64,000 nucleotides of DNA from Adineta vaga (GCA_021613535.1 CP075496.1:10230001-10294000), one strand, 5' to 3'; positions 5,243 to 45,500 are shown, counted from the stretch's first letter. A program made the numbers and translations. Notes: generated from the letters alone by a model not told the origin.

Positions 5243-6723
5243 ATGACCACAATATTTAATCGAAATCCTGGAGGTTTTCGTGGTTATTCGAATGAACAGA
5301 AAACACTACGTGCAAAACTTGATCATTTAATTAAATGGACACGAGATTTAAAAAGTAATATTCTTAAACAATCATGTAAAGCATTACAAACAAATAATAG
5401 TAATTCTTCGAATGTTAATCGTCAAATAGTCGATCAAATTCATGATGATCTCGATGAATATAAACGAAAATTCGATCGTGAATTGGGCCGTATACATGAT
5501 ATATGTGATGCATTAGCGAATAATTCTACAACCAATGATAAAGAAGAAAATCTTCGTAATGACATTCTTGAAGCATTACGTCGTTCACCAACTTATTCAT
5601 CACTTGAACGACATATTGACGATGACAGTACACGGTCACATATTCGTGTCAAACTACGGGAAAATTGTCATCCAGGACAGAATCGTATACCACGTATTCC
5701 ATCTTTATCAACGGATAAAATTAAACGTAAAGCATCACAACCCATTGCTCTAGATATAATTGATACAACAAGAATACCTGGAGCAAAACGGCGACCACAA
5801 AATAATCCATTTAAACGTTCAAGATCGTATACCAATATTGAACATACAGAAACTCAATTAGGTATGGATTATATTGAAGAAGATGAAAATGATCTATCAT
5901 GGAAACCATTTGGACCTAAAAGATCTGTTTCACAAGTTAACGTATCATCAACAAATCAAGAACAATCCAATGATGAACAAATAACGATCTCAACGGAGAA
6001 ACCAATTAGAGCAGCTGTTAATAACGATTCCTCGGATGAAGAATTTGATATTGCATGGGAACGTCGTGCAAAACTAAAAGCTCGAAAAGAAGCAGCTACA
6101 ACAGTACCTACTGAAACACCATCAAAGCGAACTGTTCGATTCTCACCTTCAACACATGAACCTGTTGAATGTATTAATCTTGATCTCGATGAAACAACAC
6201 AAGATGGTATATCACAAATAAAAGATCAGAATAATAATCATAATAAACAACAAACTGATATTGTTCATATCGATGATGATGAAGAGACAATCATACCAAC
6301 AGTAAATATTTTGATGATTTCTTTCATAAATTAATATTTTTTTTTAATCGATTTTAGAGATCATTATCATCATTATCACAACAAATGAATATACAGAATG
6401 ATGATAGTTTCATAATTGATGATAGTGATGATGATGATGATGAAATAATTCCTTTGAGTGATGATGATATTCCAAAAACTTCGAAGATTACAAGAAGAAA
6501 AACTCCATGGACTACATCCGAAATTCAAGTCTCCAATGGAAATTCTCAATCTCAATCGTTACATAATCCGTATCGTGTTGGTATTGCTGATCCAAGTATA
6601 CGATCAGTCTTTTTACCTCCACCTAATTCTCAGATCATGGCAGCTACGAGCAGTGGAAATCGTAGAGCACAAGGTGTTAATCGAAAATCAACATCGACAA
6701 AACGAGGAACAAGTAGTAAATAG
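5243..6723 (+). CDS. Uncharacterised protein with N-terminal coiled coil and acidic/low-complexity C-terminus (2 exons)
   Basis: ATG 5243. A phase-0 GT-AG intron at 6302-6357 joins ORF 5216-6334 in frame to ORF 6385-6723. Confidence 0.75.
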
Positions 6724-7257: not shown

Positions 7258-8202
7258 ATGGATGGAAAATCATTACTTCCTTATATAAAATTTTGGACAT
7301 ATCTTCTCCTCCTTATTCCGTCGACTGTATGTTCATTGTTTGTACTTTATTTTCTTCTTTTCGATCGAATTCTACGTCGTGCTTGTCACAATCATATGAT
7401 TATTCTTCTGCTCTTCATTTGTTTTATTTGTCAACTAACTATTTATCCATGGATGCTTTATTTCCATATTAATGGAAAGTATTGGCCAAGATCATGGATA
7501 TTTTGTAGTATTTGGTCATTTATTGATTGGGGATTGTATATAACACAAGTCGTTCTCTTCGCTTGGACTTCAATCGAAAGACATATACTTATTTTTCATG
7601 ATCAATGGATTGTTACAAGAAAAAATCGTCTTTGTATTCATTATCTTCCTCCAATCTATCTGACAATTTATTGTTTTATTTATTATAGTCTTGTTTATTT
7701 CTTTCCACCTTGTGAAAGTTTTATTAATGATTCAAGTAACGCATGTATGATTAGCTGTCTCTATAACAATCGTGTATTTTATCTATGGGAAACTATAGTA
7801 AATCAATTAATACCTAATTCATTTATAATTATATTTAGTCTTACATTGATTTTACGTGTTCTTTGGCAAAAACATCGTTTACATCAACAAATTCAATGGC
7901 GAAAACATCGAAAAATGACGATTCAATTATTATCTATTTCATTTCTATATTTATTCTTTTCATTTCCGAATATATTCATAATTCTTCTTTACATATTTGG
8001 TTTATCCATTGATCCTGCTAATGTAATAAAAAAATATACAGAATTTTTTAGTTATTTAGTGATATTATTCTTTCCTTTTGTTTGTATTTTACCCTTACCT
8101 GAATTAAGAAAAAAGATTCGAAAAATTTTATCCTTAAGACGATATCGACATGAAAGAATGATTCATCCAGAAATATTAACTGGAAGAAATCTTCAACGAT
8201 AA
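7258..8202 (+). CDS. Orphan rhodopsin-like GPCR, intronless (paralogue of 3695)
   Basis: 314 aa, 7TM, WTSIERHILIF, WRKHRKMTIQLLSIS. Confidence 0.92.
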   Translation: MDGKSLLPYIKFWTYLLLLIPSTVCSLFVLYFLLFDRILRRACHNHMIILLLFICFICQLTIYPWMLYFHINGKYWPRSWIFCSIWSFIDWGLYITQVVLFAWTSIERHILIFHDQWIVTRKNRLCIHYLPPIYLTIYCFIYYSLVYFFPPCESFINDSSNACMISCLYNNRVFYLWETIVNQLIPNSFIIIFSLTLILRVLWQKHRLHQQIQWRKHRKMTIQLLSISFLYLFFSFPNIFIILLYIFGLSIDPANVIKKYTEFFSYLVILFFPFVCILPLPELRKKIRKILSLRRYRHERMIHPEILTGRNLQR

Positions 8203-8456: not shown

Positions 8457-10049
8457 TTAAATCATAAATTCTCGTTCTCTTCCTAATTTGACTGTTAATT
8501 GTGGTAATATTGTTGAAAGCTCGGTAATTAATTCTATACAATCTTTATTCACAATTATTCCACGTAAATCAATGATTTGAAGTGATGACATTGGATATTT
8601 TATTAATGGATGCATTACACCATAACAACCACTTGACTCTAAAGGATTTCCATTTAATGTTAAGATTTTTAAGGTTTCATTAGTTGCTAAACCTTTTCCA
8701 ATGTAAATAGAACATTCTGTATTGAATTGATTATTATCTAAATGAAATTTTTCTAATGTGGAATTCACTTTCAGGAATTCGCCAATTGCTTTTGCAGCTG
8801 ACAGACCAGCTCCATTCCATGATAGATCAAAGGTTGTTAAGCGTGCATTCGATGCAAGTAATTTAATAAGTAAAGCACATGATTTTGAACGTAACCGATT
8901 CCATGCGAGATGAAATTCTTCAATTGTTTGATTTTCAGCTAATGTTTGACCAAATATACGACCTGTTGTTTCATTTTCAAAGAAATTCTTATTCAAATTT
9001 ATATATTTAATATAATCATTGTGTGTAAAAACTTCAGCAAAATATGATGCACATTCATCATTGAAACGATTTCCATCAAGATGAAGAATTCGTATCGTAC
9101 GATTTGAACAAAGTATTGAACATAGAGCTATACAACCTACAAAAAAATATCTAGTTTGTTGAGGTGTAACTTCTTAACTACTGATTTCTGTTATATCTCA
9201 ACGAGTATGATTAAATAGATTATGAACTTTCTATTTTCTTAATTGATCTCGTATAGATTGAATGCACTTATTTTTCACTCGATCAACACTAGCAATTTCG
9301 TCTTTTTTCCCTCTTTGTTTATAGATCGATTTCTTTTGATTATACGAAACCATACAAACTGTCAAATATAAATATGAATTTTATATTTATGTCTTTCAAC
9401 TACTTCATAATTCTATAATCAATTGAAAAAAGAAAATTTAATTATATACACAATTTTGATGTCGTTTTTCTTTTTTCATACCTTGCAAACCAATATCATT
9501 ATCAGCAAGATTTAATTCTGTAATAAATTCATTATCTGCAATCAATTGTGCAATATAAATTGCACCATTTGATCCGAGATTATTATCTCTTACATCTAAT
9601 TTTGTTATATTTGTATTGATTTTTAATGATGGTAACATAACTTTGATATTAATCGGTTTTAAACCAGAATAACGTATGCTTAATGTTTTACTATCAAGAT
9701 GACGTAAGAAATATGTTGATGGTATCACACCATGACGATGACACTGATCTAAATAGAGACCTTTACATGAATAATCTTTGTTCGGTTCTTCGTCTTGTTC
9801 AATATCTGTATCGTAATTGAAATGATGTTGAATTGGAAGATCATCGTTATCATGATTAATTTCTTGATTTACGGGTGAAATCATTGATGAATTAGAATCA
9901 AAATTTAGACCAGATATTCCTGCTGAACGTGTTGCATCGCGAACAAGTCGTTTTGGTTTCACATGAGCAGAAAGAACTAATCGAGTTTGATTATCAAGTA
10001 ATTCTGGTCGATTGAATACCTTTGGTGTTGTCGACGACAATGATGTCAT
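8457..10049 (-). CDS. LRRC74-like ribonuclease-inhibitor-type LRR protein (2 exons)
   Basis: YDTD motif, YLDQCHRHGVIPSTYFLRHL, repeated LxLxxNxL units. Intron 9481-9137 joins GLQG|CIALCSIL in frame with ORF 8457-8996. Confidence 0.85.
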
Positions 10050-20184: not shown

Positions 20185-20971
20185 ATGAATCTTATCTTTG
20201 TAGCAGGCATATGGTTGCTTATTTTCATCGCAATATACGACATATCAGATGCAGCTAGTATAAACGATCGATGTCCAATGCCATCCAAATTGAAATACAA
20301 TTATGACTTTAATTGGAAATCAAAATCACACGAATGGGAAAATACAAAAGCTACACCTGGTTTTCTTCAACTTGTTCTTTCTTGGTAATGCTTTTTTTTC
20401 TATATTTCTTTATGTATACATGTTAATATTTAGGACACCAACATTCTGTGAATCTCTTTCATTATCTTCTCAAAATAAAGAATTTCAATGTCGTAATAGT
20501 AAATATTTTGGTCTTGTTGTCCATGGTTTATGGCCACAAACTTCAAGAGCTACATCTGTTCGATCACATCCACGTAATTGTCGAGATGAAAAACAACTCG
20601 ATCCTGCATTCGTCAAACGATATTATTGTATGATGCCTGATGAAGATCTTATTCAATCACAATGGGAAAAACATGGTAAATTTGGTAGTAATAAATAATT
20701 TCGATTTTGTTTGTCTTTATTAGGTACTTGCTATTTCAAGACAGCTAATGATTATTATGGAACGATTGAAACACTTTATAACTCATTAAATATTCCTGAT
20801 ATTGCATCCATGAAGAATGTCACGCAGACAAATGTTCGAAATGCATTTTTAACATTGAATCCAAAATTACCGGCATCATCAATACAAGTATCAACGAATT
20901 ATGAAAAGCGTTTGAAAGAAATTAAAATATGTTATGATTTGAAGCAACAATATGTTCGTTGTTCCTCATAA
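20185..20971 (+). CDS. Ribonuclease T2 family, secreted (3 exons)
   Basis: Signal peptide; LVLSW|TPTFC; CAS I GLVVHGLWPQ; CAS II LIQSQWEKHG|TC; C-terminal LKEIKICYD. Confidence 0.93.
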
Positions 20972-21237: not shown

Positions 21238-22623
21238 TTATTGATTATGACAACATTTGGTAGCATGCCTATCTTCTTTGCTGACAGTACGAACTTCGAC
21301 AGACGGGACTGATACTGTTGATCCCCCTATATCCAAAAGATGATAATTCTCTTTATTGGAAACTTCTGGATTGATCAGATGATGTTGTACGAGTAAGCCC
21401 ACCGTCGTTAATGCAAGTTTTTCTTCCACAGCAGGTCCTCGATTTTGCCAATATTCACCAAAGACACCATGTGAATCTGCTGGATTCAATTCTGATACAG
21501 TGAAACCATGACGAGCAATAGCGACAGTCAATCGATGCATATCTTGATCGGCAATCAGTACTGGAATAGGACCATTATAGTTCGATCTATGAAATTCATT
21601 CTCAAAGACATCAAAAACATCAAAAACAGTTGCACCTGATTTGCTACGATTAAATATTGGTAAAGCGAGCACGATAGCACGAATATTTGTGTACGTTCGT
21701 CCATCTTCCTCGAGCACTTTTCGAATAGCTTGTGCTGAAAATTGTCGTACTTTTTGGTCAATTCCGATCTGTTTACCTGAGAAGACACCTAATCCAATGC
21801 CGGTTTCCACAACAATCTGCACACCCTCCATATCGCATGCTAGTAGTCGTAATCTGACCATACGTACAAGACTATCTCGAAGACGTTCTTCATCAAGTTT
21901 GGCTGCTGGTCCATTTTTGACGGGTGTAAAGTCTCTACCGTTGTAAATAAATGGCAAACCTGTTTCGGGATCTAGATGAAACACTTTTTGCCAATTAGTT
22001 ATATAATATTGAATGTCACCAATATCATGTTTTCGACCAGCGAAATCAATACCAGTTACAGAAACAAGTTTGATCCGATGAGGCCAATCTTCCGACAGCT
22101 GGCGCGATATAATTTTAGCATCAAACTCCATCAAGATAGGACATGTTGAGATACGAACAACGAACTTCATTCTAAAAGCGTCAACGCCATCTTCACTCTT
22201 GCCTTGTAATGCTTTGTGTAAAGTTTCTTTACTGATTCCACGGACACTTTTATCTGCATATACTCGATAAGAATCTTGCCACTTTCTGATCTCGTTTAAT
22301 GACATCCTGAATGAATTAGAGGATTTGCTAGGAAAGTGAATTACTGTATCTGACCGCATCTGATATGGATATTGTTGTAACTGAAATGATTTGACACCTT
22401 GTACAATATATTCCTCTGGAATATTTCTAAAACCAAATGTTTGATATAGAAAATATTCCATTTGTTCAGTTTCACGACTACATCGATCACTCATTGGTCC
22501 ATTTTTGTCCATAGGATATAAGTGCTGTAGATTTAGGAGAAGCTTCATGACAGATTGATTGTGGCATTGCTGATAACCAAATATCTTACTTCGGTAAGGT
22601 AATGGTTGAGATGTCGCAGACAT
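21238..22623 (-). CDS. Putative MavL/DUF4804-like macrodomain protein, stand-alone (copy 1)
   Basis: Intronless 461-aa ORF. Motifs LVSVTGIDF, ETGIGLGVFSG (macrodomain-type Gly-rich diphosphate loop) and NPADSHGVFGEYW...AVEEKLALTT. CDS certain; family assignment inferred. Confidence 0.7.
   Translation of the reverse strand: MSATSQPLPYRSKIFGYQQCHNQSVMKLLLNLQHLYPMDKNGPMSDRCSRETEQMEYFLYQTFGFRNIPEEYIVQGVKSFQLQQYPYQMRSDTVIHFPSKSSNSFRMSLNEIRKWQDSYRVYADKSVRGISKETLHKALQGKSEDGVDAFRMKFVVRISTCPILMEFDAKIISRQLSEDWPHRIKLVSVTGIDFAGRKHDIGDIQYYITNWQKVFHLDPETGLPFIYNGRDFTPVKNGPAAKLDEERLRDSLVRMVRLRLLACDMEGVQIVVETGIGLGVFSGKQIGIDQKVRQFSAQAIRKVLEEDGRTYTNIRAIVLALPIFNRSKSGATVFDVFDVFENEFHRSNYNGPIPVLIADQDMHRLTVAIARHGFTVSELNPADSHGVFGEYWQNRGPAVEEKLALTTVGLLVQHHLINPEVSNKENYHLLDIGGSTVSVPSVEVRTVSKEDRHATKCCHNQ
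21412..21579 (-). repeat. 168-bp inverted repeat of 25334-25501
   Basis: Reverse complement matches with only 2 mismatches (hand alignment). Confidence 0.92.
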
Positions 22624-23632
22624 TGAAATAATGAATGTCCTTCACAATAAAGAAGAAAAATTTTCAGCGAAAAAGAAGTATAAAAGTACTGGTTGGTAGA
22701 ATTGTGGATGTTGTTTATGACTATTTATCGTCATACTCAACGTGCACACAGAAAGCAAGAAAGAAAAATATTTTTCTCCTTAAAATAATACGCATGTCAA
22801 GAGAATTGCCGTCTTTCATATTCTTTTTTTTCCAACATTAACAACGCACGAAGTGAATCATTCGATCAAACTTCACCATTTTGTTTCATTGCAATTTCGT
22901 GTCCTATATATATATTTTAGTAAGCAATTTTTTACCAATGAAATATTAAATAATATCGTATTCAAGATCCGTAAACGTTAATTAATGAAGATTCTCTATA
23001 AATAGAATAAAAAATGTCTTTAATTTTAAACTTTTCTCTGAAATATAACACTTGCGTATGGTACTTTCAATGGCCCAAGTTAGTTCTATTTGTTTCGTTG
23101 GTTGTTGCAAAGGATTGATAATAAAAGATTCATTAACATCTAAACTTAGATCTGAATTATAGTTCATCCATTTGTTTTATGTAACCGAGATATATTCCTT
23201 TGAAATCAGTCTTGAAACTATAGATTTTAATTGAAGCTCGATTAAATAAATATTTTCTTTTCTTTTCAGAGAAAAAAAATATCACTTGGCAGATTCAAAA
23301 CGACTAATGTGGTAGGAATATTTTTTCGTTTCTTTCAAGTATTGTGTATGTTTTTATTTATTTCTTACTGTTGATTGATATCTATTTCACATTGCTACGA
23401 AACAAAGACAACGAGAAAGTTTTCTAGTTACATTCCTTTTTTGTATTCTTATCAGTTACAGAAGTGTTTGGTCGCGTCACAAGACCTTGTGCGGTAAATA
23501 TTTTGATTCTGAGTTGTGTACATTGGCAAACAATTAATTCTGTTCGCTGAAAAACTACAACGGCACTACTTCTAAAAGAAATCGTTAAATACTTACAGTT
23601 TGCGACTCCACACTGCGTCAAATTGAAACAAT

Positions 23633-25582
23633 ATGAGCGGATCCAATAAATTAAGAGATAAATGTTCCAAATGTGATCATGATCGTTCAGTATGTATATG
23701 TCGTGGATGTAAAAAGTTATTCTGCATGAAACATATTGAAGCACATAAAAAAGATCTTCAGAAGGAATTAGATTGTATTGAAGAAGAACATAAGACTGCT
23801 AGAAAAACTTTTGATCAGTGGAACAAATCAAAACAATTGTCGGATGATATTGATCAATGGGAAACTGATTTTATTGAAAAGGTTAAATCTGCTGCTGTCG
23901 CTGCTAGAAAAGATTTAAAACTAATAAAAGAACAATCAGATGAAAATGTGTCTGGCTTCCTAAAACAATTTACTCAAGCAATCGATACCGCGCGAAAAGA
24001 TGAGAACATCAACGAAATTAAGATCAATTCAATCAAGCAACAGCTTGCAGATTTTCAAAAGGAATTGAGCAAGCGTGATACGACAAAACTTGTTGATCAT
24101 GATATTGAAACTGTTCCACTTCTTAAACTCGAAACTTCATATAGACAGATACCGGAAGAACCAAACACTACTAACCAAGATGCAAATGATGGCGTCGAAA
24201 GCCGAAGTGAAAAAGATCCGTCTGAAAAACTGTCTCGTCCTAGTTCTGTTACACTACCCCCGCCAAATGTACAACAAAAACTGAATCCGTCACCAATACC
24301 GCACTCCTCCGCTTATCTCAGCATGATATTTGGTCTGAATGTCTCTACCACTACCAACAAACATATTCAGCGTCTATTCGACGAACTAATGTTACTTCCT
24401 ATGATGGATAAAAATGGACCAATGAGTGGTAAATGTGAATTTGAAACTAATCAAATGGAACAGTTTCTCACGAACACATTTGGCTTTCAGAATATTCCAG
24501 GAAAATACATTGTTCAAGGTGTTCGTGCATTTCAACTCGCAAGACCTCCTAAATCTTTGCCACATGACCACAAAATTCACTTTCCCTGCAAGTCAGAGAG
24601 TTCGTTCACAATGACTGTGAGAGAAATTCAAGAGTGGCAATCTACTTATCGTGTCTATGCAGGCAAAGGAGGAAGCATGACGCATGACTTTCTGAAACAA
24701 GCGTTACAAGGTAAAAGTGGTGATGGTGAAGAGGCATTTCGAATGAAGTTTGTTGTTCGTATTTCAACATGTCCTATCTTGATGGAGTTCGATGGTAAAG
24801 TGATTCCTCGTAAACCATCTGAAGATTGGCCCAATCGGATCAAACTTGTTTCGGTGACTGGTATTGATTTTGCTGGTCGAAAGCATGATGTTGATGATAT
24901 TCTGCATTACATAAAAAACTGGGCAGATATATTCGAAGTCGATCATACGCAAACTAAACCGGCGTTACTAAATGAAAGAGATTTTGCACGAAGGAGAGGT
25001 GCAGTAGTTGCTGAGCTAAGTGAAAGTCGTCTTTTCAACGACTTGCAGTATATGACCTATCTCAGACTTCGTGCATGTGATGAAGAAGGTGTGCAGATTG
25101 TTGTGGAAACAGGTATCGGACTTGGTGTCTTTTCAGGCAGACATATTGGTATCGATGAAAGAGTACGTACAACTTCTGCGATCGCGATTCGGACCGTACT
25201 CGAGCGATACGGACCATCGTATAGGAACATTCGTGCTGTTGTATTTGCTTTACCTATATTTGAAAGAGGCACATCCGATGAACACATTCGTGATACTTAC
25301 CATACATTTACTGAACAATTTGCTGAACCACAATATAATGGTCCTATTCCAGTACTAATTGCCGATCAAGATATGCATCGATTGACTGTCGCTATTGCTC
25401 GTCAAGGTTTCACTGTATCAGAATTGAATCCAGCAGATTCACATGGTGTCTTTGGTGAATATTGGCAAAATCGAGGACCTGCTGTGGAAGAAAAACTTGC
25501 ACTGACAACGGCTGGTTTACTCGTACAGCATCATGTGATCAATCCAGAAGTACTACATGCGAAGAACTACAAGATAATCTAA
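23633..25582 (+). CDS. B-box/coiled-coil + putative MavL-like macrodomain protein (copy 2)
   Basis: Intronless, 649 aa. N-terminal CSKC-x8-CRGC-x4-C-x2-H-x3-H, coiled coil, Pro/Ser linker, then a domain homologous to copy 1. Confidence 0.75.
   Translation: MSGSNKLRDKCSKCDHDRSVCICRGCKKLFCMKHIEAHKKDLQKELDCIEEEHKTARKTFDQWNKSKQLSDDIDQWETDFIEKVKSAAVAARKDLKLIKEQSDENVSGFLKQFTQAIDTARKDENINEIKINSIKQQLADFQKELSKRDTTKLVDHDIETVPLLKLETSYRQIPEEPNTTNQDANDGVESRSEKDPSEKLSRPSSVTLPPPNVQQKLNPSPIPHSSAYLSMIFGLNVSTTTNKHIQRLFDELMLLPMMDKNGPMSGKCEFETNQMEQFLTNTFGFQNIPGKYIVQGVRAFQLARPPKSLPHDHKIHFPCKSESSFTMTVREIQEWQSTYRVYAGKGGSMTHDFLKQALQGKSGDGEEAFRMKFVVRISTCPILMEFDGKVIPRKPSEDWPNRIKLVSVTGIDFAGRKHDVDDILHYIKNWADIFEVDHTQTKPALLNERDFARRRGAVVAELSESRLFNDLQYMTYLRLRACDEEGVQIVVETGIGLGVFSGRHIGIDERVRTTSAIAIRTVLERYGPSYRNIRAVVFALPIFERGTSDEHIRDTYHTFTEQFAEPQYNGPIPVLIADQDMHRLTVAIARQGFTVSELNPADSHGVFGEYWQNRGPAVEEKLALTTAGLLVQHHVINPEVLHAKNYKII
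24297..25470 (+). repeat. Direct repeat, near-identical to 26962-28138 (C-terminal domains of copies 2 and 3)
   Basis: Long runs of identical nucleotides starting at taccgcact..ctccgcttatctcagcatg in both copies. Confidence 0.92.
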
Positions 25583-26423
25583 TGGAGTCGTGAAGTTGAA
25601 GTTAATTTACTGATTTGGTGTCGATGAATTATATGAGTATGCGATCATAGAACTGAAATTTTTAAACAAGGATTTTTAGAGAGTAGTTTTTCATTTTGTG
25701 GTATTTTGATTGTGTCAGTTGTAAACTTCATTTAATTTAAACATGTGCACATGATAAATTTGGAATTAAAATATAATGTTCGAACGATATAAATATAATT
25801 TGTTATTTATATCAATAGATGTGTATTTTCTCGAATTGCTTACCATAGAGAAGAGTTATGGTGACGGAATAACTGTGCTATATTAGATTAGTATTTATAT
25901 CAAATCATAAGTGAAAAACTTTCGAAGAAACTACAATAACATATATTCGATTGTTGCTGAGGAATCCGACTCCATATCAATCACGAAGAACGTTACAAGA
26001 ATTATTTGCAGTAACACTTTTGATGATATAAGCATCTTTTTACTTTATTTTATTCCAATAGTGTACGTAGTAGACGACTTTCTTCTATGTGAACACTGAC
26101 TAATTTATCTGAAACTTGTGCCAGTATGCTAAAATGATTCTCTCAGTTTCATTGAAATAGGATGTTCTTGACTTATCATATACGTATTCGCAAGAACAAC
26201 AACAACATAGTATTGCAATACGAAGAATCTTTTAAATATCATGAAATTTGTTCTTTTACAATATTTGAGAAAACGTAATTGTAGGAAGAAACCTGGCAAT
26301 GCAGACGGTGTTGTTTAGATTTTTCTTTTCTTTTTTTCCTACCACGCGGTAGTTGTTTTGTTACCTATGTAAAACAACACATAACAAACTAATTCAAGTT
26401 TTGAGTGTGATAGGAAAAAAGCT

Positions 26424-28250
26424 ATGGCTTCGAGTAATAATACAAAAAAACCATGCTGTAAATGCAGTAAAGGTGGTGCTACATTCACTTGCGATGGGTG
26501 TCGACTTTCATTCTGTTTGAAACATGCATCGGATCATCGACAAGAACTATCTCTACGGATGAATAATATTGGACAACAACATGACCTTCTGAAACAAAGT
26601 ATTGAACAAGACAGTCTCTACAAGACGCTACTACAAGATATTGATGAATGGGAGAAGGAGACTATCGAAAAGATACGAACCACTGCGAATATGGCTCGCG
26701 CGGATCTGAAACGGTTAGAAGCTCAATGTAAAACTGGCTTCAATGAGATTTTGAATGGATTGTCTGATGAATTTCGCTCACATCGCGAAAATGACGACTT
26801 CACAGAACAAGATCTTGATCGGTGGATGAAACAACTTGAAGAATTGCACCAAGAGGTAACAAATCCGACTACAATACACGTTGTTAAAGAACAATTATTA
26901 CCTATCTGTTCTGTAAGAAACAAAAAGACAGAAACGAGCAAGAACACAAATATCAATTTATTACCGCACTACTCCGCTTATCTCAGCATGATATTTGGTC
27001 TTAATGTCTCTACCACTACCAACAAACATATTCAGCGTCTATTCGACGAACTAATGTTACTTCCTATGATGGATAAAAATGGACCAATGAGTGGTAAATG
27101 TGAATTTGAAACTAATCAAATGGAACAGTTTCTCACGAACACATTTGGCTTTCAGAATATTCCAGGAAAATACATTGTTCAAGGTGTTCGTGCATTTCAA
27201 CTCGTAAGACCTCCTAAATCTTTGCCACATGACCACAAAATTCACTTTCCCTGCAAGTCAGAGAGTTCGTTCACAATGACTGTGAGAGAAATTCAAGAGT
27301 GGCAATCTACCTATCGTGTCTATGCAGACAAAGATATAGAAGGCATGGCGCATGACTTTCTGAAACAAGCGTTACAAGGTAAAAGTGGTGATGGTGAAGA
27401 GGCATTTCGAATGAAGTTTGTTGTTCGTATTTCAACATGTCCCATCTTGATGGAGTTCGATGGTAAAGTGATTCCTCGTAAGCTATCTGAAGATTGGCCT
27501 AATCGGATCAAACTTGTTTCAGTGACTGGTATTGATTTTGCTGGTCGAAAGCATGATGTTGATGATATTCTGTATTATATAAAAAACTGGGCAGATATAT
27601 TCGAAGTCGATCATACGCAAACGAAGCCGGCGTTACTGAATGAAAGAGATTTTGCTCGAAGGAGAGGTGCAGTAGTTGCAGAGCTAAATGAAGGTCGTCT
27701 TTTCACCGACCTGCGGTATATGGCCTCTCTCAGACTTCGTGCATGTGATGAAGAGGGTGTGCAGATTGTTGTGGAAACAGGTATCGGACTTGGTGTCTTT
27801 TCAGGCAGACATATTGGTATCGATGAAAGAGTACGTACAACTTCTGCGATCGCGATTCGTACTGTGCTTGAAGAAGAGGCAGCATCGTATAGGAACATTC
27901 GTGCTGTTGTATTTGCTTTACCTATATTTGAAAAAGGCACATCCGATGAACACATTCGTGATACTTACCATACATTTACTGAACAATTTGCTGAACCACA
28001 ATATAATGGTCGTATTCCAGTACTGATTGCCGATCAAGATATGCATCGATTGACTGTCGCTATTGCTCGTCAAGGTTTTATTGTATCAGAACTGAATCCA
28101 GCAGGTTCACATGGTGTCTTTAGTGAATATTGGCAAAACGGAGAACCCTCTCTGGAAGAAAAAGTCGCACTTACAACAGTTGGTTTACTTGTGCAACATC
28201 ATCTGATCAATCCAGAAGTATTGCATAAAGAGAATTATAACTTGATCTAA
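26424..28250 (+). CDS. B-box/coiled-coil + putative MavL-like macrodomain protein with altered active-site loop (copy 3)
   Basis: Intronless, 608 aa. CCKC-x8-CDGC-x4-C-x2-H-x3-H plus coiled coil. C-terminal domain nearly identical to copy 2, but the loop reads NPAGSHGVFSEYWQNGEPSLEE. Confidence 0.75.
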   Translation: MASSNNTKKPCCKCSKGGATFTCDGCRLSFCLKHASDHRQELSLRMNNIGQQHDLLKQSIEQDSLYKTLLQDIDEWEKETIEKIRTTANMARADLKRLEAQCKTGFNEILNGLSDEFRSHRENDDFTEQDLDRWMKQLEELHQEVTNPTTIHVVKEQLLPICSVRNKKTETSKNTNINLLPHYSAYLSMIFGLNVSTTTNKHIQRLFDELMLLPMMDKNGPMSGKCEFETNQMEQFLTNTFGFQNIPGKYIVQGVRAFQLVRPPKSLPHDHKIHFPCKSESSFTMTVREIQEWQSTYRVYADKDIEGMAHDFLKQALQGKSGDGEEAFRMKFVVRISTCPILMEFDGKVIPRKLSEDWPNRIKLVSVTGIDFAGRKHDVDDILYYIKNWADIFEVDHTQTKPALLNERDFARRRGAVVAELNEGRLFTDLRYMASLRLRACDEEGVQIVVETGIGLGVFSGRHIGIDERVRTTSAIAIRTVLEEEAASYRNIRAVVFALPIFEKGTSDEHIRDTYHTFTEQFAEPQYNGRIPVLIADQDMHRLTVAIARQGFIVSELNPAGSHGVFSEYWQNGEPSLEEKVALTTVGLLVQHHLINPEVLHKENYNLI

Positions 28251-28887
28251 GGAAGTCGAGAAATTCAACTTGATACACCAGTTTGGAATTATTCAATTAA
28301 TTTTAAAAGATTTAAAAATAAGGAAAAGGAGCATTTTTATATAGAACTGTAATACTTTTTAACATACATGTTTCAACGAACATACTATATATTCTGACGT
28401 ATCACGCGTGATATTATTTATAATTAGAACTTTTAGTCGTATTATATATTTATCTTTAGGTTGTATAGATACTCAAGTATTCAGACACAACTGTAATTAA
28501 ACATATTCAAACATATGAAAGTTATTAGACGAAGTGACCTAAGTTATATTTTAAAGCTTTCTACTAGATAATGATGTTGTTGTCGAACGTAGGATAAGTT
28601 GGAGAAATCCAACCACGTTTTTGTTCTTTGCTTTTTCTATCTAAATGAAAGTATGTGAGAAGAAAAAGAAAAATACAACACTCTTTTATGTGTTACGAAG
28701 AAAGAACAATACACAAGACAGTAAAAACAATTCCTTTTTTTTACAAATTTTATCATGGTATGGTATCCAAATTGTTATTGCTATGAACTATAAATCAATC
28801 TTTTCCTAGTTCAAAAACATTTTAGCCAATTTTAGTAATAAATCATCTGAAGCTACAACTCTGAATAATCCATCAGAGCATTCAATA

Positions 28888-37499: not shown

Positions 37500-38588
37500 A
37501 TGTCTTCATCTTCTCCTCTTACTGTTCCATCTATTGATGAAGTCTATGCAGCTCAAGTTCGTTTGCAAGGTATTATTAATCGTACTCCACTTTTAAAATT
37601 AAATTATGATATTCCTGGTATGGAAATCTATTTGAAATGTGAACAATTTCAACCTATTTCAACATTTAAATTACGTGCAGCTGCTAATGCTGTTCAAATT
37701 TTATCTCCTGAAGAGAAACAAAATGGTGTTGTTACAGCATCTGCAGGTAATATGGCTCAAGGTTTAGCCTGGATTGCTCGAAAAGAAAATCTTAAATGTC
37801 AAGTCTTAGTACCCGACACTGCTAATGAAATTAAAGTAAAAGCAATTGAAAGATTAGGAGGAGAAGTTACTCGATGTTCATTTGAACAATGGTGGCAAGC
37901 GATTGTTACACATCAATGTCCAATGTTGGATGGTCATTTTGTTCATCCAGTATGTGATCGAAATGTAATGGCAGGAAATGGAACGATTGCATTAGAAATA
38001 TTAGATGAATTACCCGATTGTGATGCTATACTCGGTAAGTCAATTTACATACTGATAAAGAATTCTTCGAAAGTATTGATCAGCTATAATTTTCTTTTTC
38101 TTTCAGTTCCTTATGGTGGTGGTGCTCTCATTACTGGTATTGCATCTGTTGCTAAACATCTTAAACCATCTATCGATATATTAGCTTGTGAAATTGAAAC
38201 TGCTGCACCACTGGCTGCTGCATTTCATCACAATCAAATAACTAAAATTCCAATGGAAAAATCATGGGTTGATGGTATTGGTAGTTCAAGTGTTTTAGAT
38301 GAAATGTGGCCATTAGTTAAAACTTATGTCGATCATTCAATTGTTGTCTCATTAAAAGAAACTGCAAGAGCATTAAAAATTTTAATCGAAAGAAATCATT
38401 TCATTTGTGAAGGTGCAAGCGCGACAACAATTGCTGCTGCATTATGGCATTATATGAATTATGTACAAAATGGAAAAGCTAGTTCGAGTCGAAAAGATTC
38501 TCTAAAACAATTTAAAGTTGTAGCAGTTTTATCCGGAGCTGGAATTGATAATGAAACAATTATTAAATGTTTGAACGAAACTTTATAA
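37500..38588 (+). CDS. PLP-dependent serine/threonine dehydratase (fold type II)
   Basis: RTPL, LKCEQFQPISTFKLR (PLP lysine), TASAGN, GNGTIALE, VPYGGGALITG, EGAS, LSGAG. In-frame 72-nt intron at 38035-38106. Confidence 0.92.
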   Translation: MSSSSPLTVPSIDEVYAAQVRLQGIINRTPLLKLNYDIPGMEIYLKCEQFQPISTFKLRAAANAVQILSPEEKQNGVVTASAGNMAQGLAWIARKENLKCQVLVPDTANEIKVKAIERLGGEVTRCSFEQWWQAIVTHQCPMLDGHFVHPVCDRNVMAGNGTIALEILDELPDCDAILGKSIYILIKNSSKVLISYNFLFLSVPYGGGALITGIASVAKHLKPSIDILACEIETAAPLAAAFHHNQITKIPMEKSWVDGIGSSSVLDEMWPLVKTYVDHSIVVSLKETARALKILIERNHFICEGASATTIAAALWHYMNYVQNGKASSSRKDSLKQFKVVAVLSGAGIDNETIIKCLNETL

Positions 38589-39501: not shown

Positions 39502-42500
39502 ATGTCTGGTTCAAGAAAACAATCAATTGTTTCACGTATTCTTCATTTGTAAGTCAAGACCTAAACATGCATGTGTATATCTGATAATAGATTCGTTCTG
39601 TTGTTTGTTTTATCTCTCTTACATACTAAAAGAATATCGATTACGATGAAAAATAAAAGAGATCTTTTTCTCTTGCAGTTAATATGTTTTGTTTGAAAAG
39701 AAAATATGTTTTTAAAAATACTTTTTACATATGTATATATATATATATATCATCTTTTATTTGTATGAAAAGCAATAAGAATAAAAGAACGGTTTGTTGT
39801 AGAAACGCACTTACAAAAACGCATCATACTTAAGTAACGAACAAAGAAATAATGAAAATTGAAACCAAATGATACTTCTCTTCGTTTCTTTTCGCTTTTT
39901 TTACTTATTCATTCCTTATTCTGTTGTGTAAGATTATCAAATCGAGTCTTTTTTTCTCTGTTAGTCATTATTTACTAAATGAAAGTACACACGATCTAAT
40001 TCTATCCGATTGAAATGATATCAAAGTCATAGATGATAGAAGAGATATATTCGAAATCTGTACTCATCTTCAAAATCGAAATCTATCAAAAAGAGTGAGA
40101 GAGACAGAAATTAATCTTTGACAACAATGAGATAATATTTGGATAAGACAGTATTTCAGATTAAAGAAAGAGAGAAAGAATTCTTTTTCTCTTTCTCAAT
40201 GTTTGATATCACTATGAGAACAGCAGCCAATTTTTCTTGTCATCAAATATCATTCATCAAAGTCTCCTGTTGAGCCATACATCACTTATTTATCTTTCAG
40301 ACGAAAACATACAACAAAATACAAAACGATTTTATCAATATGCCTCGACGTTCATTGCGGCAACGCCGGTAGATATCTCTTTTTTATTCTTCATTTTAAA
40401 ATTTAACAATAGAAATTGATTTATTTTCTTTACAATAATAATATTTTGTCAAGTTTTTTTCTTTCTTTCATCATTTTCGTTATGAAAAAAAGACATCAAG
40501 TTCACATGATATATATATACCTAAAAGATAGAGTTACGTGTTAATAATAACTTATCATACGTGATATTTAGTGAAATATTTAATTAATATGACGTATGAT
40601 TTCACATATCTTTATAGGTATATGATCAGTTTCTTTCTCAAAAGATGTAAAATCATCTCTGTTAATTAAATAGAATTCAATCAAGATCGTATGTTTCAAC
40701 AATTTTCAATCTAAAACTGATCTCTATAATTGAATATCATTGTATTATCAACGAGTCGCCCATCTTTATCTTAAATAATCTGATTTATAGATTAAGATAA
40801 TGTGTCATTACTTTTCTTTTCTTTTCTGTCTACTCATTGTATGCATATGAATATTTGAACGTTCGTACAATATAAATGAGTAAATTGATAGACAGATAAT
40901 GATTTAATCTAATAACTTGATATATTAGAGTAAAAAGATTACTGTTCAGAAACAAGACAGATTTTTAACAAATATATAGAAGACGAAAAAGAAAAAGCCT
41001 ACTGCAGATATACTCTATGACTCTCATTTTTTGACGTGTACAATTATAGAATAGAATTGTGGCTTGCATTGATAGTATCAATTGTCCCTTATCAAGTGAC
41101 AAATATAATATTTTGAGAATGGTAAAAGAGCTTCATATAGAAGATATGAATATTATAAATAATTAACGAAACTAACCAATCTCTCTTTAGAAAGAAAGTA
41201 TTTTCATAGGCTAAACTGTAAATTTCATTTTATTTATAGACATTCAGTTCATCCATCAAATCAAAATGGTCGTAATAATTCAACATCAAATCAAAATCTT
41301 CTTCAACCCGAATCACAAATGAATATAACTAATAATCCATTAACAGCATCGACAGGAGCACCTGAAGGTTCAAACCAAACGTCACCATTGCAATCCGTAA
41401 CACCAGTGAATAATGATGATGAGAATGCTTCAAATAATCGTAATACAACAACAAGTCAATTATTAGTAAGTTTAACAAATTTAACAGCGAATAAAAGTTC
41501 GCATTCATTATTTGCAAAATTTACCGATGCAAAAAAAACTTTATTTGGACGAACAAATGCTCCAGATCCAACATTTTCAGCAGCGGATGAAAATAGAGCA
41601 TTATTAAGTTATATTCTATCAGAAACACATCCCGAATTAGGAGTTATACAAGAATATGAAAGTAACGGTGCACAATTAAATGCAGTTACAGATGAAGGAA
41701 ATACAGCAATACATCTCTTAGCACGAGCAGAACAAGCTTCTATAGAATGTATTACTATTGTTGATTATATTATTAAACGTGGATGTGATCCCAATCGACA
41801 AAATGATTATGGATGGACAGCAGGTTTGTTCAAAATCAAATTAATTCGAATTTAATACATCTCGTTTCATTTAGCTCATTATGCATTTGCAACACGTAAT
41901 TCTGATCTAGCTATCTACCTACTCAAAGTCATGATTGATGTTAATATTTCCACTTACGATATTCATAATGGTTTGTAAAGTTTCTTTCTTCTACTACTAT
42001 TCTACAATAAACTCTCTTTAGGATATGAGTCAAACATATCTTCTACATATCGCTGCACGACAAAATGATGGTGTTCTTATACGTCTTCTTGTTAAAACTT
42101 ATAGAGCACGTATTAATGTTTTTGATGAAGATGGTTGTACACCATTACATATTTGTTGTTATGAAGATAATATAGATGCATTCAAAGCATTACTTGAAAA
42201 TGATGCTGATTTTCAGAAAGGTACACGTTTAAATCCTCATGAAACACCTGTAAGTATTTGTGTTCGATATCAATATGATACTTGTCTACAAGCTTTATTT
42301 GAATTAACAACAAATTTTAATTGGAAACGTTATTTTTCTCAATTACCACGTTCACCATTACTATGTGATTTTCCTAGTATATATGGAATTCGATTACTTG
42401 TTGAACATGGACTTGATATTGATATATGTGATGAACGTGGAAATACATTTTTACATTATATAGTCAATAAAAAAGATATTGATTATGAAGATTATATTGA

Positions 42501-45500
42501 AACCTTAGTAGAAAAATCAGCTGATTTCAATCGACAAAATCGTCTTGGACGAACACCATTTCTTGCAGCACTAGAACAGAAAAATTTTGAATTAATCGCT
42601 GTATTTTTTCGTCATATCGATGTTACAAATATCAATATAGTTGATTCATTATCGAATACAGCATTACATTATTGTAAATATCTCAATGAAACAGTTATTT
42701 ACGATACAGTTTACAAATCAAATCCATCATCATTAGATGCACAAAATCGTGATGGCAATACTCCATTACATGATGCCATTCTGTATGATAATGAACTTTT
42801 TGCACAATATCTTCTTCACCAGGGTGCTAATCTGAATTTAATGAACAAAGAAGGAAATACACCACTTCATTTAGTTGCACGTGATGATAATGGCAAAATG
42901 TGGCGATTGTTAACAAAATATTCTCAATTAAATTTAATTGCAATGAATAAAATGGGAAAAACACCATTACATTTGGCATGTGCACATGAAAGACCGAATG
43001 TTGCTTCTGTATTAATCAATAAAATAAAAATTGAAGAAATTAATTTATTAGACAAACAAGGACGTACACCATTACATGAATGTGCAGAAAATCTTAATGG
43101 ATCATTAGCAAAACATTTAATACGACATGGTGCAGATGAAAATGCTAAAGATAGTCGACAAAATACTGTTTTACATTTAGCTACAGAAAAAGGTATTATA
43201 GTAGACTAAATATCATAGATACTTTTTAAACTTCTTCTTATTTTGTTTAGGTAATCTTGAATTAGTTCGTACATTGATAAAATCATCATCGATTGATATA
43301 AATCAATTAAATGCTGATATGCATTCACCACTTGGTCTTTCAATATTATATAATCATGATGATGTTAGTAAATTCTTACTTGAAGAAGAAAACACTCGTG
43401 TTCAATCGAGTGATTTAAAAATGGCAATGCAAATGAATAGTTTTGAAATGGTGAAATTATTAATTGAAAAAGATCGAAATTGTTTACGTGTACGATCAAC
43501 AACACATGGAGATATGATTATACATATATTTATGAGAAGAAATTTCAATAATTTAGTTTGTTTAGAATCATTACTTTCATTTATATCTGATAATGAATTA
43601 TTAACGTATTTATCAGAAAATAGTTTAACATTCGGAGATAATCTACTTCATATTGCAGGTAAGTAAAAGAATAAAGATAGTTAAGTCGTGTCAAGTAATT
43701 CAGAGAGTATCTACGACATGTGTTGAAATAAATTCGACAATTATTCATCATAAATTTATTCAATTTTGATACTATTTGAGATATGATTTCTTCTAGCTCG
43801 TGAAGATACTCCAAATGCTTTGACATGTTTCTTAAATTTATCTCGTGTAAAATTTTGGTTTTGGGCGAATATGATGTTGACAAAAAATACTGAAAATAAA
43901 ACGCCATTAGAATTAGCTAATGAATTTAAACATTATGCTATTATTAAACTAATTAATTCGAAATGGAAAGAATCGTATGAATATTTATCACATTCATTAC
44001 GTGATGGTCATTGTGGTGTATCATCAACAGGTGTAACACAATCGAAACGACGATGTTATAATTGTAATCAAACAGGTTTTATCGAATTAAGTAATGGACA
44101 AAATATTCGACCATGTCCTAAATGCAACGTCTGCTTATATAAATCTCAGGATAATAGTATGCAAGTATTTCTAGCACTATTATTCAGTGATGAATCAAGT
44201 ACGATTGCACTTGATATTATGGATTCATTAATAGTTATCAATGAAGTGCAAAAAGCTGTTCATCTTTATCTTGATCATATTGAACCATGGTAAGAATACG
44301 ATGTCAATAATAATGAGTCGAACTTATTAAGATTTTATTTTTTAGGGAAGAATTTGATAAAATTGATTTAGGTGATTCAACAAGTCTTTTAAATCATTTA
44401 GTCTATGGTACTGATAGTCAAAAGGTTTGTTACTATTAAGATTCATATTTGAATAATTAAGATTGAATTTTAGCAACCAAGTAGAAATCATTCTCGTAAT
44501 CCATCTGTATCACTTATACCGCCTCCAACTACTTCGAATGCATCCGCATTACCATTAACAACAAATAAAGTATTAGTTTCATCTCAAACTAATTCCTGTT
44601 TTGAATCCAAGTGGAGCTAATCTTTTGTCCGTACCAGGACCAACAATAAATCCTACATATGAGTCTCAACCTTCAATAACAAATACAAAATTTCGACCTG
44701 ATGGCACACAGTATCGTTCTATAGCACCATTAGAAGCAATATATTATCATGAACGTTTAGATCTAATAACTCATCCACTGATTAAAGGTAATATATCTAA
44801 TTCTAAAAAGTATAAAATTAGTTTCGTGTCTTGACTATCATCTATACTCGACCGTGATTATAATTCATCTCTTTCATTCTGCTTTAAAGGTTTGATCAAA
44901 TGGAAATGGGATAATTATGCTGCAAAACATTTTTATCTCGGTTTATTACTTGAAACATTGTTTCTTATTTCATGGACATGTATTTCTTTGATTGTTCCTT
45001 TTCCAGTTCGATATGTTTATCGTTTTCCACAAGATATATGGCGTTGCCTATTATGGGCAATAAGTATTGCATTTTTGATATGGGAAATCATTCGTGAAAT
45101 GTTTGATATATCCTATGCAAGAAAACGTTATGAAGATTATCTGATATGGGAAAGTCAACGAACAAAAAATCGATTAGATTTAATTTCAAAAAATAAATAT
45201 AAATCGAATACTGGAATACAATCAACAACGACTCCATTTGGTAAGACAGAAAGTGTAATTAAAATTGAAAATGAAACAGGTGAAACAGAACATATGACAG
45301 TCAATGAAACAACAAATACAGCTATGTCATCAAATATCAGTTTCACACCTATGCGTTCACATCATTCTCAACATCATCCCTTACCAGCAACAGTACCAAC
45401 GATAATCAAAGGTAAACTAACTGAACCAGTACCAAATCAACAGCAACCGATTGATGCCCCATTGAATTCATTTGATCCATCCAATACTCTTCTTAATGGT

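Follow-up and report, generated by a model that had tools for sequence, protein, structure and literature searches.

The locus and its three genes

This work concerns a 64,000-nucleotide stretch of genome from Adineta vaga, a bdelloid rotifer (GCA_021613535.1 CP075496.1:10230001-10294000, C4 in our assembly; hereafter the window), and in particular a cluster of three adjacent genes at positions 21,238 to 28,250 which share a domain of about 425 amino acids (aa). An initial annotation, made from the sequence alone, had described the cluster as MavL-like ADP-ribosyl hydrolases, two of them fused to TRIM-like heads. All three open reading frames (ORFs) were recovered exactly at the positions and on the strands it had given them (Table 1), and the domain, which it had put at roughly 430 residues, is present in every copy. 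As described there, copy 1 is headless and is transcribed divergently from copy 2. Over the shared domain, copies 2 and 3 are 92% identical to each other, and each of them is 62% identical to copy 1.

The family has 209 matches in one database, and an exhaustive phmmer search of another recovered 124 cluster representatives; it thus goes far beyond chance. The A. vaga genome (a 100.8-Mb, six-contig assembly, to which all genome-wide counts refer) contains six such macrodomain loci: the three studied here, one located 67 kb away on C4 and two on C1. Heads are present at five of the six. One C1 paralogue (G000:C1:3888958-3890821; L008:4974-6648, minus strand) gives its match in two frames with a 13-nt gap between them (5879 to 5893), suggestive of a frameshift and possibly of a pseudogene; in the other C1 paralogue the ORF begins downstream of the zinc finger.

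The three genes are transcribed. Four small assemblies, mapped to 22300-28290, provide RNA-type contigs that cover the three gene bodies, including copy 3, together with short flanks, and leave 22700-23300 (in one run) and 25900-26300 uncovered. The contigs of copy 1 extend to 22696-22702. No contig joint falls inside any of the three coding sequences, while a single joint from 22919 to 23272 points to a putative intron in the 5' untranslated region (UTR) of copy 2; the initial description of the genes as intronless is therefore true of the coding sequences only. The arrangement suggests a 5'-UTR intron in copy 2 and a bidirectional promoter region common to copies 1 and 2. At 23698-24201 the RNA-type contigs also hold a second haplotype of the copy 2 head, at about one third of the depth and with about 20 linked differences, consistent with allelic or homoeologous variation.

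The macrodomain genes are richer in GC than their neighbours, as had been noted: their GC content is 0.39-0.40 and their GC at third codon positions (GC3) 0.27-0.30, against 0.28-0.34 and 0.09-0.18 in nine of the ten neighbouring ORFs of the window. Contamination and pseudogene status of the cluster were both considered and ruled out, because the genes lie on a 15.2-Mb chromosome-scale contig and are intact, transcribed ORFs under purifying selection.

Fold and active site of the shared domain

To assign the domain we used an AlphaFold2 (AF2) model of copy 1, built on an alignment of 35 diverse domain sequences (A2) from which the family profile was also derived. The model has a mean predicted local distance difference test score (pLDDT) of 91.1 and a predicted template modelling score (pTM) of 0.91. 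Foldseek against the PDB gave 26 matches at E<=1e-3 (E 9e-13 to 1e-4); the best was Larg1, at E 9.4e-13, and the next match after these 26 appeared only at E 0.04. The initial annotation had named a predicted structure without a macrodomain fold as grounds for its rejection; the opposite was found, all 26 significant matches being to Larg1, to CG2909 or CG3568, or to MavL. In a comparison with 48,161 chains, the VIA aligner placed Larg1 first (Z 27.9 over 301 residues, 2.9 A), ahead of CG3568 (18.9), MavL (18.8), Deinococcus radiodurans PARG (9.2, the fourth-best structure) and ordinary macrodomains (about 7). A structure search of the ESM Atlas returned an arthropod DUF4804/MavL-like cluster (TM score 0.56-0.58 over 301 residues), followed by microbial PARG clusters.

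The sequence evidence agrees with the model. The A2 profile, run with hmmsearch against the PDB sequences, reaches Larg1 at E 1.9e-13 over 152 profile positions that cover both functional loops, while a single-sequence search of the same PDB sequences with copy 1 finds nothing, Larg1 being reached by the family profile only. Based on the structure matches and on this profile match, we assign the domain, as modelled, to the Larg1-type (MavL-class, topologically permuted) macrodomains. The MavL-like identity first proposed is thus upheld for the class, with Larg1 rather than MavL as the nearest relative and with the MavL catalytic-loop motif kept only in part. The cluster proteins have no match in NCBIfam. 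The Pfam MavL family (PF24754) matches the same stretch in all three proteins, at 12.6, 16.6 and 18.0 bits and below its cut-off of 27; 11 of the 35 diverse members likewise match it below cut-off.

Larg1 (Lpg0081 of Legionella pneumophila; PDB 7W3S, 7WBK) shares with the rotifer proteins the permuted fold and the loop order and spacing N-P-x-D-x5-G...E, and the equivalents of its residues F283, D351, P370, D372, G378, W381 and E387 are all kept. On the other hand, the rotifer proteins are only about 15-18% identical to it, and they replace N379 by Glu and E380 by Tyr and add a second invariant Glu after the E387 equivalent. Larg1 is a secreted bacterial effector, reportedly an arginine ADP-ribosylhydrolase that reverses the Ceg3 modification of mitochondrial ADP/ATP translocases; the rotifer genes are animal nuclear genes without an adjoining ADP-ribosyltransferase partner, and their domain is fused to B-box/coiled-coil heads or, in Rotaria, to caspases. 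MavL (Lpg2526) and the Drosophila proteins CG2909 and CG3568 (DUF4804/PF16062) belong to the same class by structure (Foldseek E 7e-8 to 1e-5) and share the GxGxGx[F] diphosphate loop and a loop Asp and Gly at equal spacing. However, the A2 profile matches none of them among the PDB sequences, and their motif WD...PGN[DE] reads AD...FGEY in the rotifers.

Alignment with Larg1 identifies the residues expected to line the pocket (Table 1); SEQRES positions of Larg1 equal the residue number minus 15, which we verified on D351-V352, F283, D372, N379, E380 and E387. Four of the six ADP-ribose contacts of Larg1 are kept (F281, D361, D383 and E400 of copy 1) and two are changed (N379 to E390, E380 to Y391). 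Mutagenesis of Larg1 shows what these positions do there: E387A abolishes function and F283A/E387A abolishes de-ADP-ribosylation (PMC9191684), and ADP-ribose binding is lost in D372A, N379A and E387A (PMC10989772).

Both motifs of the initial annotation were examined in this light. The diphosphate-binding loop GIGLGVF is found in copies 1, 2 and 3, with G277 invariant in the family and G279 and F281 at least 90% conserved. Compared with the class motif [VIL]xGxGxGx[FWY], the rotifer sequence E-T-G-I-G-L-G-V-F matches at the three glycines and the aromatic residue and has Glu in place of V/I/L; Larg1 itself departs from the motif at the first Gly. The second motif, D-x5-G-x10-EE, holds for copies 1 and 2 (D383, G389, E400, E401) and fails in copy 3, which reads G-x5-S-x10-EE. 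The catalytic loop had also been likened to a WD-x5-GN loop of the same spacing. In the rotifer loop the Asp, the Gly and the final aromatic residue do stand at class spacing, whereas the W, P, N and [DE] of the class are not kept.

These residues are strongly conserved. Among the 120 closest bdelloid proteins, D361, W392, Q413, H414 and N418 are present in all 120, G389 in 119, D383 and E400 in 117, E401 in 116 and E390 in 114; E401 is also invariant in the 35 diverse sequences, where E400 is at least 90% conserved. The ratio of nonsynonymous to synonymous substitution (dN/dS) among the macrodomain genes is 0.26-0.35. The residues that hold ADP-ribose are under strong purifying selection across the family, and near-invariance across so many bdelloid paralogues argues for a working pocket. 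By analogy with Larg1, we infer for copies 1 and 2 both ADP-ribose binding and the hydrolytic removal of mono-ADP-ribose from proteins.

Copy 3 presents a different profile. Its overall dN/dS relative to copy 2 is 0.29, and the 29 codons of its catalytic loop have accumulated nine derived replacements against three silent changes. The combination of D-to-G and G-to-S replacements in the loop occurs in copy 3 only, that is, in one of 120 family members. Given that the D372A mutation costs Larg1 its ADP-ribose binding, inactivity and weak binding are more probable for copy 3 than a role as a simple reader of the modification.

Table 1 Features of the cluster, with positions in the window, and copy 1 residues aligned with Larg1.
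Feature	Position	Strand	Basis or remark
Copy 1: stand-alone Larg1-like macrodomain gene, 461 aa, headless	21238..22623	-	ORF, AF2 model, RNA-type contigs
Gene-conversion tract, copy 1 arm, aa 349-404	21412..21579	-	168 bp, 98.8% identity to 25334-25501
Copy 1 catalytic loop LNPADSHGVFGEYWQNRGPAVEE, aa 379-401	21421..21489	-	D383 = Larg1 D372, E400 = E387, E401 extra invariant Glu
Copy 1 diphosphate-binding loop GIGLGVF, aa 275-281	21781..21801	-	F281 = Larg1 F283; HMM alignment, conservation
Region between divergent copies 1 and 2, probably bidirectional promoter	22624..23632	.	Strands; copy 1 contig end about 22700; upstream copy 2 exon end 22919
Putative copy 2 5'-UTR intron, GTAAG...AG	22920..23271	+	Single contig joint 22919 to 23272; weak
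Copy 2: head, linker and macrodomain, 649 aa, active-site residues intact	23633..25582	+	ORF
Copy 2 B-box-like zinc finger, aa 11-38	23663..23746	+	Cys/His pattern
Copy 2 coiled coil: helix aa 32-122, return helix aa 128-148	23726..24076	+	AF2 head model
Copy 2 low-complexity linker, aa 149-215, absent from copy 3	24077..24277	+	Low pLDDT
Copy 2 macrodomain, from YLSMIFG	24314..25582	+	
Gene-conversion tract, copy 2 arm, aa 568-623	25334..25501	+	
Copy 2 3' UTR to poly(A) addition site	25583..25819	+	Contig end at 25819, with a run of A, some 237 nt past the stop (one contig)
Copy 3: head and macrodomain, 608 aa, intact ORF, catalytic loop degenerate	26424..28250	+	ORF
Copy 3 B-box-like zinc finger, aa 11-38	26454..26537	+	
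Copy 3 degenerate catalytic loop LNPAGSHGVFSEYWQNGEPSLEE	28092..28160	+	D383G, G389S, R395G, G396E equivalents
F281 (copy 1) = Larg1 F283			Lid; HMMER alignment
D361 (copy 1) = Larg1 D351			Adenine contact; HMMER alignment
P381 (copy 1) = Larg1 P370			Loop; HMMER alignment
D383 (copy 1) = Larg1 D372			Catalytic pocket; HMMER alignment
G389 (copy 1) = Larg1 G378			Loop; HMMER alignment
E390 (copy 1) = Larg1 N379			Distal-ribose hydroxyls; HMMER alignment
Y391 (copy 1) = Larg1 E380			Catalytic loop; Larg1 E380A without detectable drop in ADP-ribose binding; HMMER alignment
W392 (copy 1) = Larg1 W381			Loop; HMMER alignment
E400 (copy 1) = Larg1 E387			Distal-ribose 2'-OH; HMMER alignment

Heads, cluster evolution and origin of the family

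The heads of copies 2 and 3 begin with the Cys/His pattern C-x2-C-x8-C-x2-C-x4-C-x2-H-x3-H, after which a long helical stretch carries a conserved IDxWE...A..AR motif. The AF2 head model (pLDDT 84) consists of a zinc knuckle, a 91-residue helix (32-122) and a return helix (128-148). B-box Pfam models (ANCHR-like, Trim66) match repeatedly, all below cut-off (the best at 20.6 bits against 27). Foldseek finds no significant match for the head model; among its weak rows the PML B1-box is the best small-domain match (1.4 A over 32 columns, E 1.1), and the KAP1 RBCC is also present. No RING was detected by Pfam in the cluster proteins, whose single zinc finger starts at residue 11 with nothing before it, so that E3 ligase activity is not predicted.

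We also tested the head as a homodimer in silico. The predicted dimer reached an ipSAE interface score of 0.57, compared to 0.00 for the best control, with runs agreeing in at least 74% of contacts and a partner pLDDT of at least 73. The predicted contacts are antiparallel, pairing residue 88 with 73/77 and 131/138 with 45/49. The mark used in this test is reached by 21 of 30 solved homodimers and by none of 23 single chains, and a pass may reflect memory of solved TRIM coiled coils. The model suggests that the head probably dimerises copies 2 and 3, as in TRIM proteins.

The head is a common host module, TRIM-like in architecture and without a RING: of the 152 or more matches to its profile in the A. 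vaga genome, only about five stand before a macrodomain. Sampled partners are NHL propellers, in a RING-less B-box-coiled-coil-NHL layout, and unknown domains. Two of the sampled head genes (L009:587-2026, minus strand; L010:330-1763, plus strand; L001-L006) are fused to NHL propellers, and six have C-terminal domains of 180-240 aa without a Pfam match. A word-based search with the copy 2 head returned only the query itself, a result that the sensitivity of the tool makes uninformative. RING-less B-box-coiled-coil-NHL proteins such as Brat are counted among the TRIM/RBCC proteins. The rotifer heads resemble these in the B-box1-like spacing of the finger, the helix of about 90 residues with its return helix, the predicted antiparallel dimer and, for the Brat type, the occurrence of the identical head before NHL propellers. 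They differ in lacking a RING, in having one zinc finger only, with seven conserved ligands, and in their C-terminal cargo, a macrodomain, which we did not find described in TRIM proteins. Thus the TRIM-like B-box/coiled-coil head of the initial annotation is borne out as an architecture, through the finger, the predicted dimer and the NHL fusions, while a RING is missing and the Pfam cut-off for a B-box is not reached.

Comparison of copies 2 and 3 at the DNA level shows that their heads are about 50% identical and that identity jumps to 99-100% exactly at the head/macrodomain boundary. Copies 1 and 2, which are inverted relative to each other, share a 168-bp tract that is 98.8% identical, compared to 69% in its flanks; the tract (residues 349-404) spans the adenine contact and the whole catalytic loop. 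As synonymous sites are identical too, the sequences indicate gene conversion of this tract and not selection. The C4 paralogue outside the window (P0006, annotated as 593 aa) has an intron of about 800 nt between the head exon and the macrodomain exon, which fits exon shuffling. We considered the raised GC and GC3 as a sign of foreign origin and rejected it: the host-type heads share the raised GC3, which therefore says nothing about origin, and biased gene conversion, acting on a multi-copy family, would explain it just as well.

The named close matches of the macrodomain are all bdelloids (Adineta, Rotaria and Didymodactylos), and no other named animal was present among the matches examined. 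In four Rotaria proteins (P0072, P0120, P0070 and P0075) an N-terminal caspase (PF00656, E 8e-27) takes the place of the B-box head. Relatives at 43-49% identity come from Pelomyxa, Paratrimastix, Symbiodinium, Polarella and Durusdinium, several with EF-hand heads, and proteins on clearly bacterial contigs fall in the same range. Of the latter, P0132 lies beside genes for a Legionella-type outer-membrane protein, MurB and cytochrome bd, and P0142 has a canonical Macro gene in its vicinity. Bacteria also supply members at a greater distance, among them a protein from Ca. Marinamargulisbacteria and another whose contig abounds in Sel1, ankyrin and WipA genes. A scan of bacterial genomes with alignment A4 gave two loci only, one of them on a low-coverage metagenome-assembled contig of uncertain origin. 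WWE, a module that binds ADP-ribose and recognises poly-ADP-ribose units, is the fusion partner of other distant relatives, which lie on a compact eukaryotic contig.

A maximum-likelihood tree (36 rows, 400 columns, LG+C20) groups the bdelloid sequences in a single clade (support 95/82), nested in a 99/99 clade of intermixed bacteria and protists within which the branching order is not resolved. Since the bdelloid clade sits among bacterial and protist relatives without any other named animal, horizontal acquisition is likely, as a single event in the bdelloid ancestor from a microbial source, followed by exon shuffling. Acquisition and domain shuffling had both been proposed at the outset; the tree, the relatives and the intron-separated exons support them short of proof.

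Two further leads on origin were not borne out. A feature search of the Atlas pointed to a cluster that is 50% Nucleocytoviricota, and two pattern-based scans of IMG/VR found no viral relative, leaving a giant-virus link unsupported, though such scans fall short of disproving it. A contig of about 62 kb carrying the nested relative P0123/P0250, first considered a virus or plasmid, proved to be ordinary bdelloid-like genomic DNA. On another bdelloid-like metagenome contig, a fusion of an ADP-ribosyltransferase with NHL (PF01129 plus NHL, 747 aa; L021:1609-3852, plus strand) lies 8 kb from a stand-alone macrodomain gene of the family.

The remaining ORFs of the window are of mixed character. The ORF directly upstream of copy 1 (20303-20695, plus strand) represents an exon of RNase T2; it scores 28 bits for PF00445, whose cut-off is 26, and contains the motifs HGLWP and WEKHG. 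A rhodopsin-type G-protein-coupled receptor (7258-8199), a leucine-rich-repeat protein (9441-10049), a pyridoxal-phosphate-dependent enzyme (37500-38585) and an ankyrin-repeat protein (42025-43206) show no link to ADP-ribosylation. A 355-aa ORF without a Pfam match (58279-59343, plus strand) has a GC3 of 0.28, resembling the macrodomain genes and not the other neighbours.

Role, alternatives and significance

The most likely role of the family is the erasure of protein mono-ADP-ribosylation, with the dimeric forms targeted through the head. For the linkage, we tentatively place arginine first, at somewhat less than an even chance, and PARG-like O-glycosidic activity second. Arginine is favoured because the four characterised members of the nearest macrodomain class are all arginine-specific (PMC10951314), and because hundreds of arginine-specific mono-ADP-ribosyltransferase (ART) genes offer candidate writers: PF01129 has at least 150 scored matches above cut-off, and 418 candidates, in the A. 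vaga genome. ADP-ribosylation genes are reported to be enriched among the A. vaga genes induced by desiccation and radiation (PMC10809525). In at least three places (G000:C4:9022371-9024300, G000:C3:13370141-13372233 and G000:C1:12543132-12545030) matches to ART (PF01129) and ARH (PF03747) are adjacent on the same strand and may be writer-eraser tandems or fusions.

Taken as a whole, we regard it as reasonably probable that the locus is a horizontally acquired cluster of Larg1-type ADP-ribose hydrolases, with two copies on dimerising host heads and copy 3 probably dead. The fusion of distant relatives to WWE speaks for this reading too. The domain would have reached the bdelloid ancestor in a single transfer, with a bacterium or protist as the probable source, and would then have been joined to host heads through exon shuffling, with local gene conversion keeping the macrodomain copies homogeneous. 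Copies 1 and 2 would hydrolyse mono-ADP-ribose, most likely arginine-linked and written by the genomic ARTs, and the heads would dimerise copies 2 and 3, the latter acting as a catalytically dead and possibly non-binding partner.

Several observations weigh against this proposal. Larg1 N379, essential for ADP-ribose binding in that enzyme, is Glu in the rotifers and Met or Gln in distant relatives; Larg1 E380 (MavL D323) is Tyr; and the class motif WDxx[SA]xPGN[DE][FY][FWY] is only partly kept in the rotifer loop A-D-S-H-G-V-F-G-E-Y-W. No Pfam family matches at cut-off, and PF16062 (DUF4804), to which the initial annotation had pointed, gives no match to the cluster proteins even at E<=1. The A. 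vaga genome holds about 47 ARH-type hydrolase segments that are possible arginine erasers, and no ART gene adjoins any of the six macrodomain loci, so that no specific writer-eraser pair can be named. The RNA type of the assemblies behind the transcription data is itself a guess. Finally, the invariant Glu-Glu pair and the WWE fusions point equally to PARG-like chemistry.

This last point leads to the most serious alternative, which we consider unlikely: a PARG-like hydrolase that cleaves O-glycosidic bonds (poly-ADP-ribose ends and Ser-, Glu- or Asp-linked mono-ADP-ribose) and not arginine-linked ADP-ribose, with E400-E401 acting like the QEE dyad of PARG. The conservation of both glutamates in the diverse and bdelloid sets speaks for it, as does the fact that Larg1 has the first Glu only, its authors having read the missing pair as evidence against PARG (PMC9191684). 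The poly-ADP-ribose recognition of WWE and the strong induction of A. vaga PARP genes by desiccation and radiation (PMC10809525) would also suit such an enzyme. The structural likeness to microbial-type PARG (PF10021; D. radiodurans PARG, 5ZDA) lies in the macrodomain core, and in both proteins a Glu-Glu pair ends the catalytic loop; yet the overall fold is far nearer to Larg1, with the large N-terminal extension and the insertion typical of that protein. The signature GGG-x6-8-QEE is likewise incomplete, since the rotifer proteins read F-G-E...V-E-E, with one Gly in place of the triplet, no Gln and the Glu-Glu pair present. A direct link is offered by P0234, the most distant relative recovered, which passes the Pfam cut-off for microbial PARG (PARG_cat_microb; 26.2 against 23.5 bits) and whose GGG-x8-LEE at 491-504 aligns with G389...E400-E401. 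The family may thus retain a PARG Glu-Glu dyad that is missing from Larg1, a suggestion that depends on one very long-branched sequence whose phmmer search did not reach the solved PARGs. The uniform arginine specificity of the nearest class also counts against PARG-like activity.

Less probable still is a non-catalytic reader that recruits the dimeric head, or the fused caspase, to ADP-ribosylated targets. A reader function is common among macrodomains, the N379-equivalent position is changed, the domain is fused to modules of signalling or scaffold type (TRIM-like head, caspase, WWE and EF-hand), and copy 3 shows that non-canonical loops are tolerated. Against this, D383, E400 and E401, which are catalytic in relatives, are conserved beyond the needs of binding alone, copy 1 and other stand-alone copies lack anything to recruit, and every characterised member of the class is a hydrolase. 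We give very little weight to an enzyme acting on a non-protein conjugate, either ADP-ribosylated nucleic acid or an NAD-derived signalling nucleotide. Some macrodomains (DarG, TARG1) do reverse the ADP-ribosylation of nucleic acids (PMC10951314), and the head and caspase fusions resemble, by analogy only, innate-immune architectures in which nucleotide signals are common; no member examined, however, is fused to a nucleic-acid-binding domain.

Read as a cluster of Larg1-type mono-ADP-ribose hydrolases, the locus bears on a class of macrodomains that was not delimited until 2022-2024, on the basis of two Legionella effectors and two proteins of the fly, and stated until now to range over bacteria, fungi and arthropods. 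The initial annotation did not recognise the architecture as described, and our full-text literature search agrees, finding no paper that treats the rotifer family or any animal homologue of Larg1 outside the insects. The locus reveals a deep, Pfam-invisible branch of the class with a modified catalytic loop, common to Legionella-like bacteria, amoebae, metamonads, dinoflagellates and bdelloid rotifers, and expanded and strongly conserved in the bdelloids. The branch occurs in domain architectures not described before, with a RING-less TRIM-like head, caspase, WWE or EF-hand. The locus also illustrates cleanly the capture, via exon shuffling, of an enzyme domain of probably foreign origin by an oligomerisation module of the host, and copies 2 and 3 form a natural pair of predicted active and degenerate paralogues for structure-function work.

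For the bdelloids, the family supplies candidate erasers to set against the products of hundreds of arginine ADP-ribosyltransferase genes. Its Glu-Glu pair may shed light on the relation between the PARG-type and the Larg1/MavL-type catalytic loops. A bolder proposal, which we advance as a long shot, is that bdelloids run a large, animal-encoded arginine ADP-ribosylation network, with hundreds of ART writers, ARH and horizontally acquired Larg1-like erasers and TRIM-like or, in Rotaria, caspase fusions, in which this family is a mechanistic intermediate carrying the PARG dyad in a Larg1 fold. If so, the removal or sensing of ADP-ribose would be coupled to oligomeric immune or cell-death effectors.

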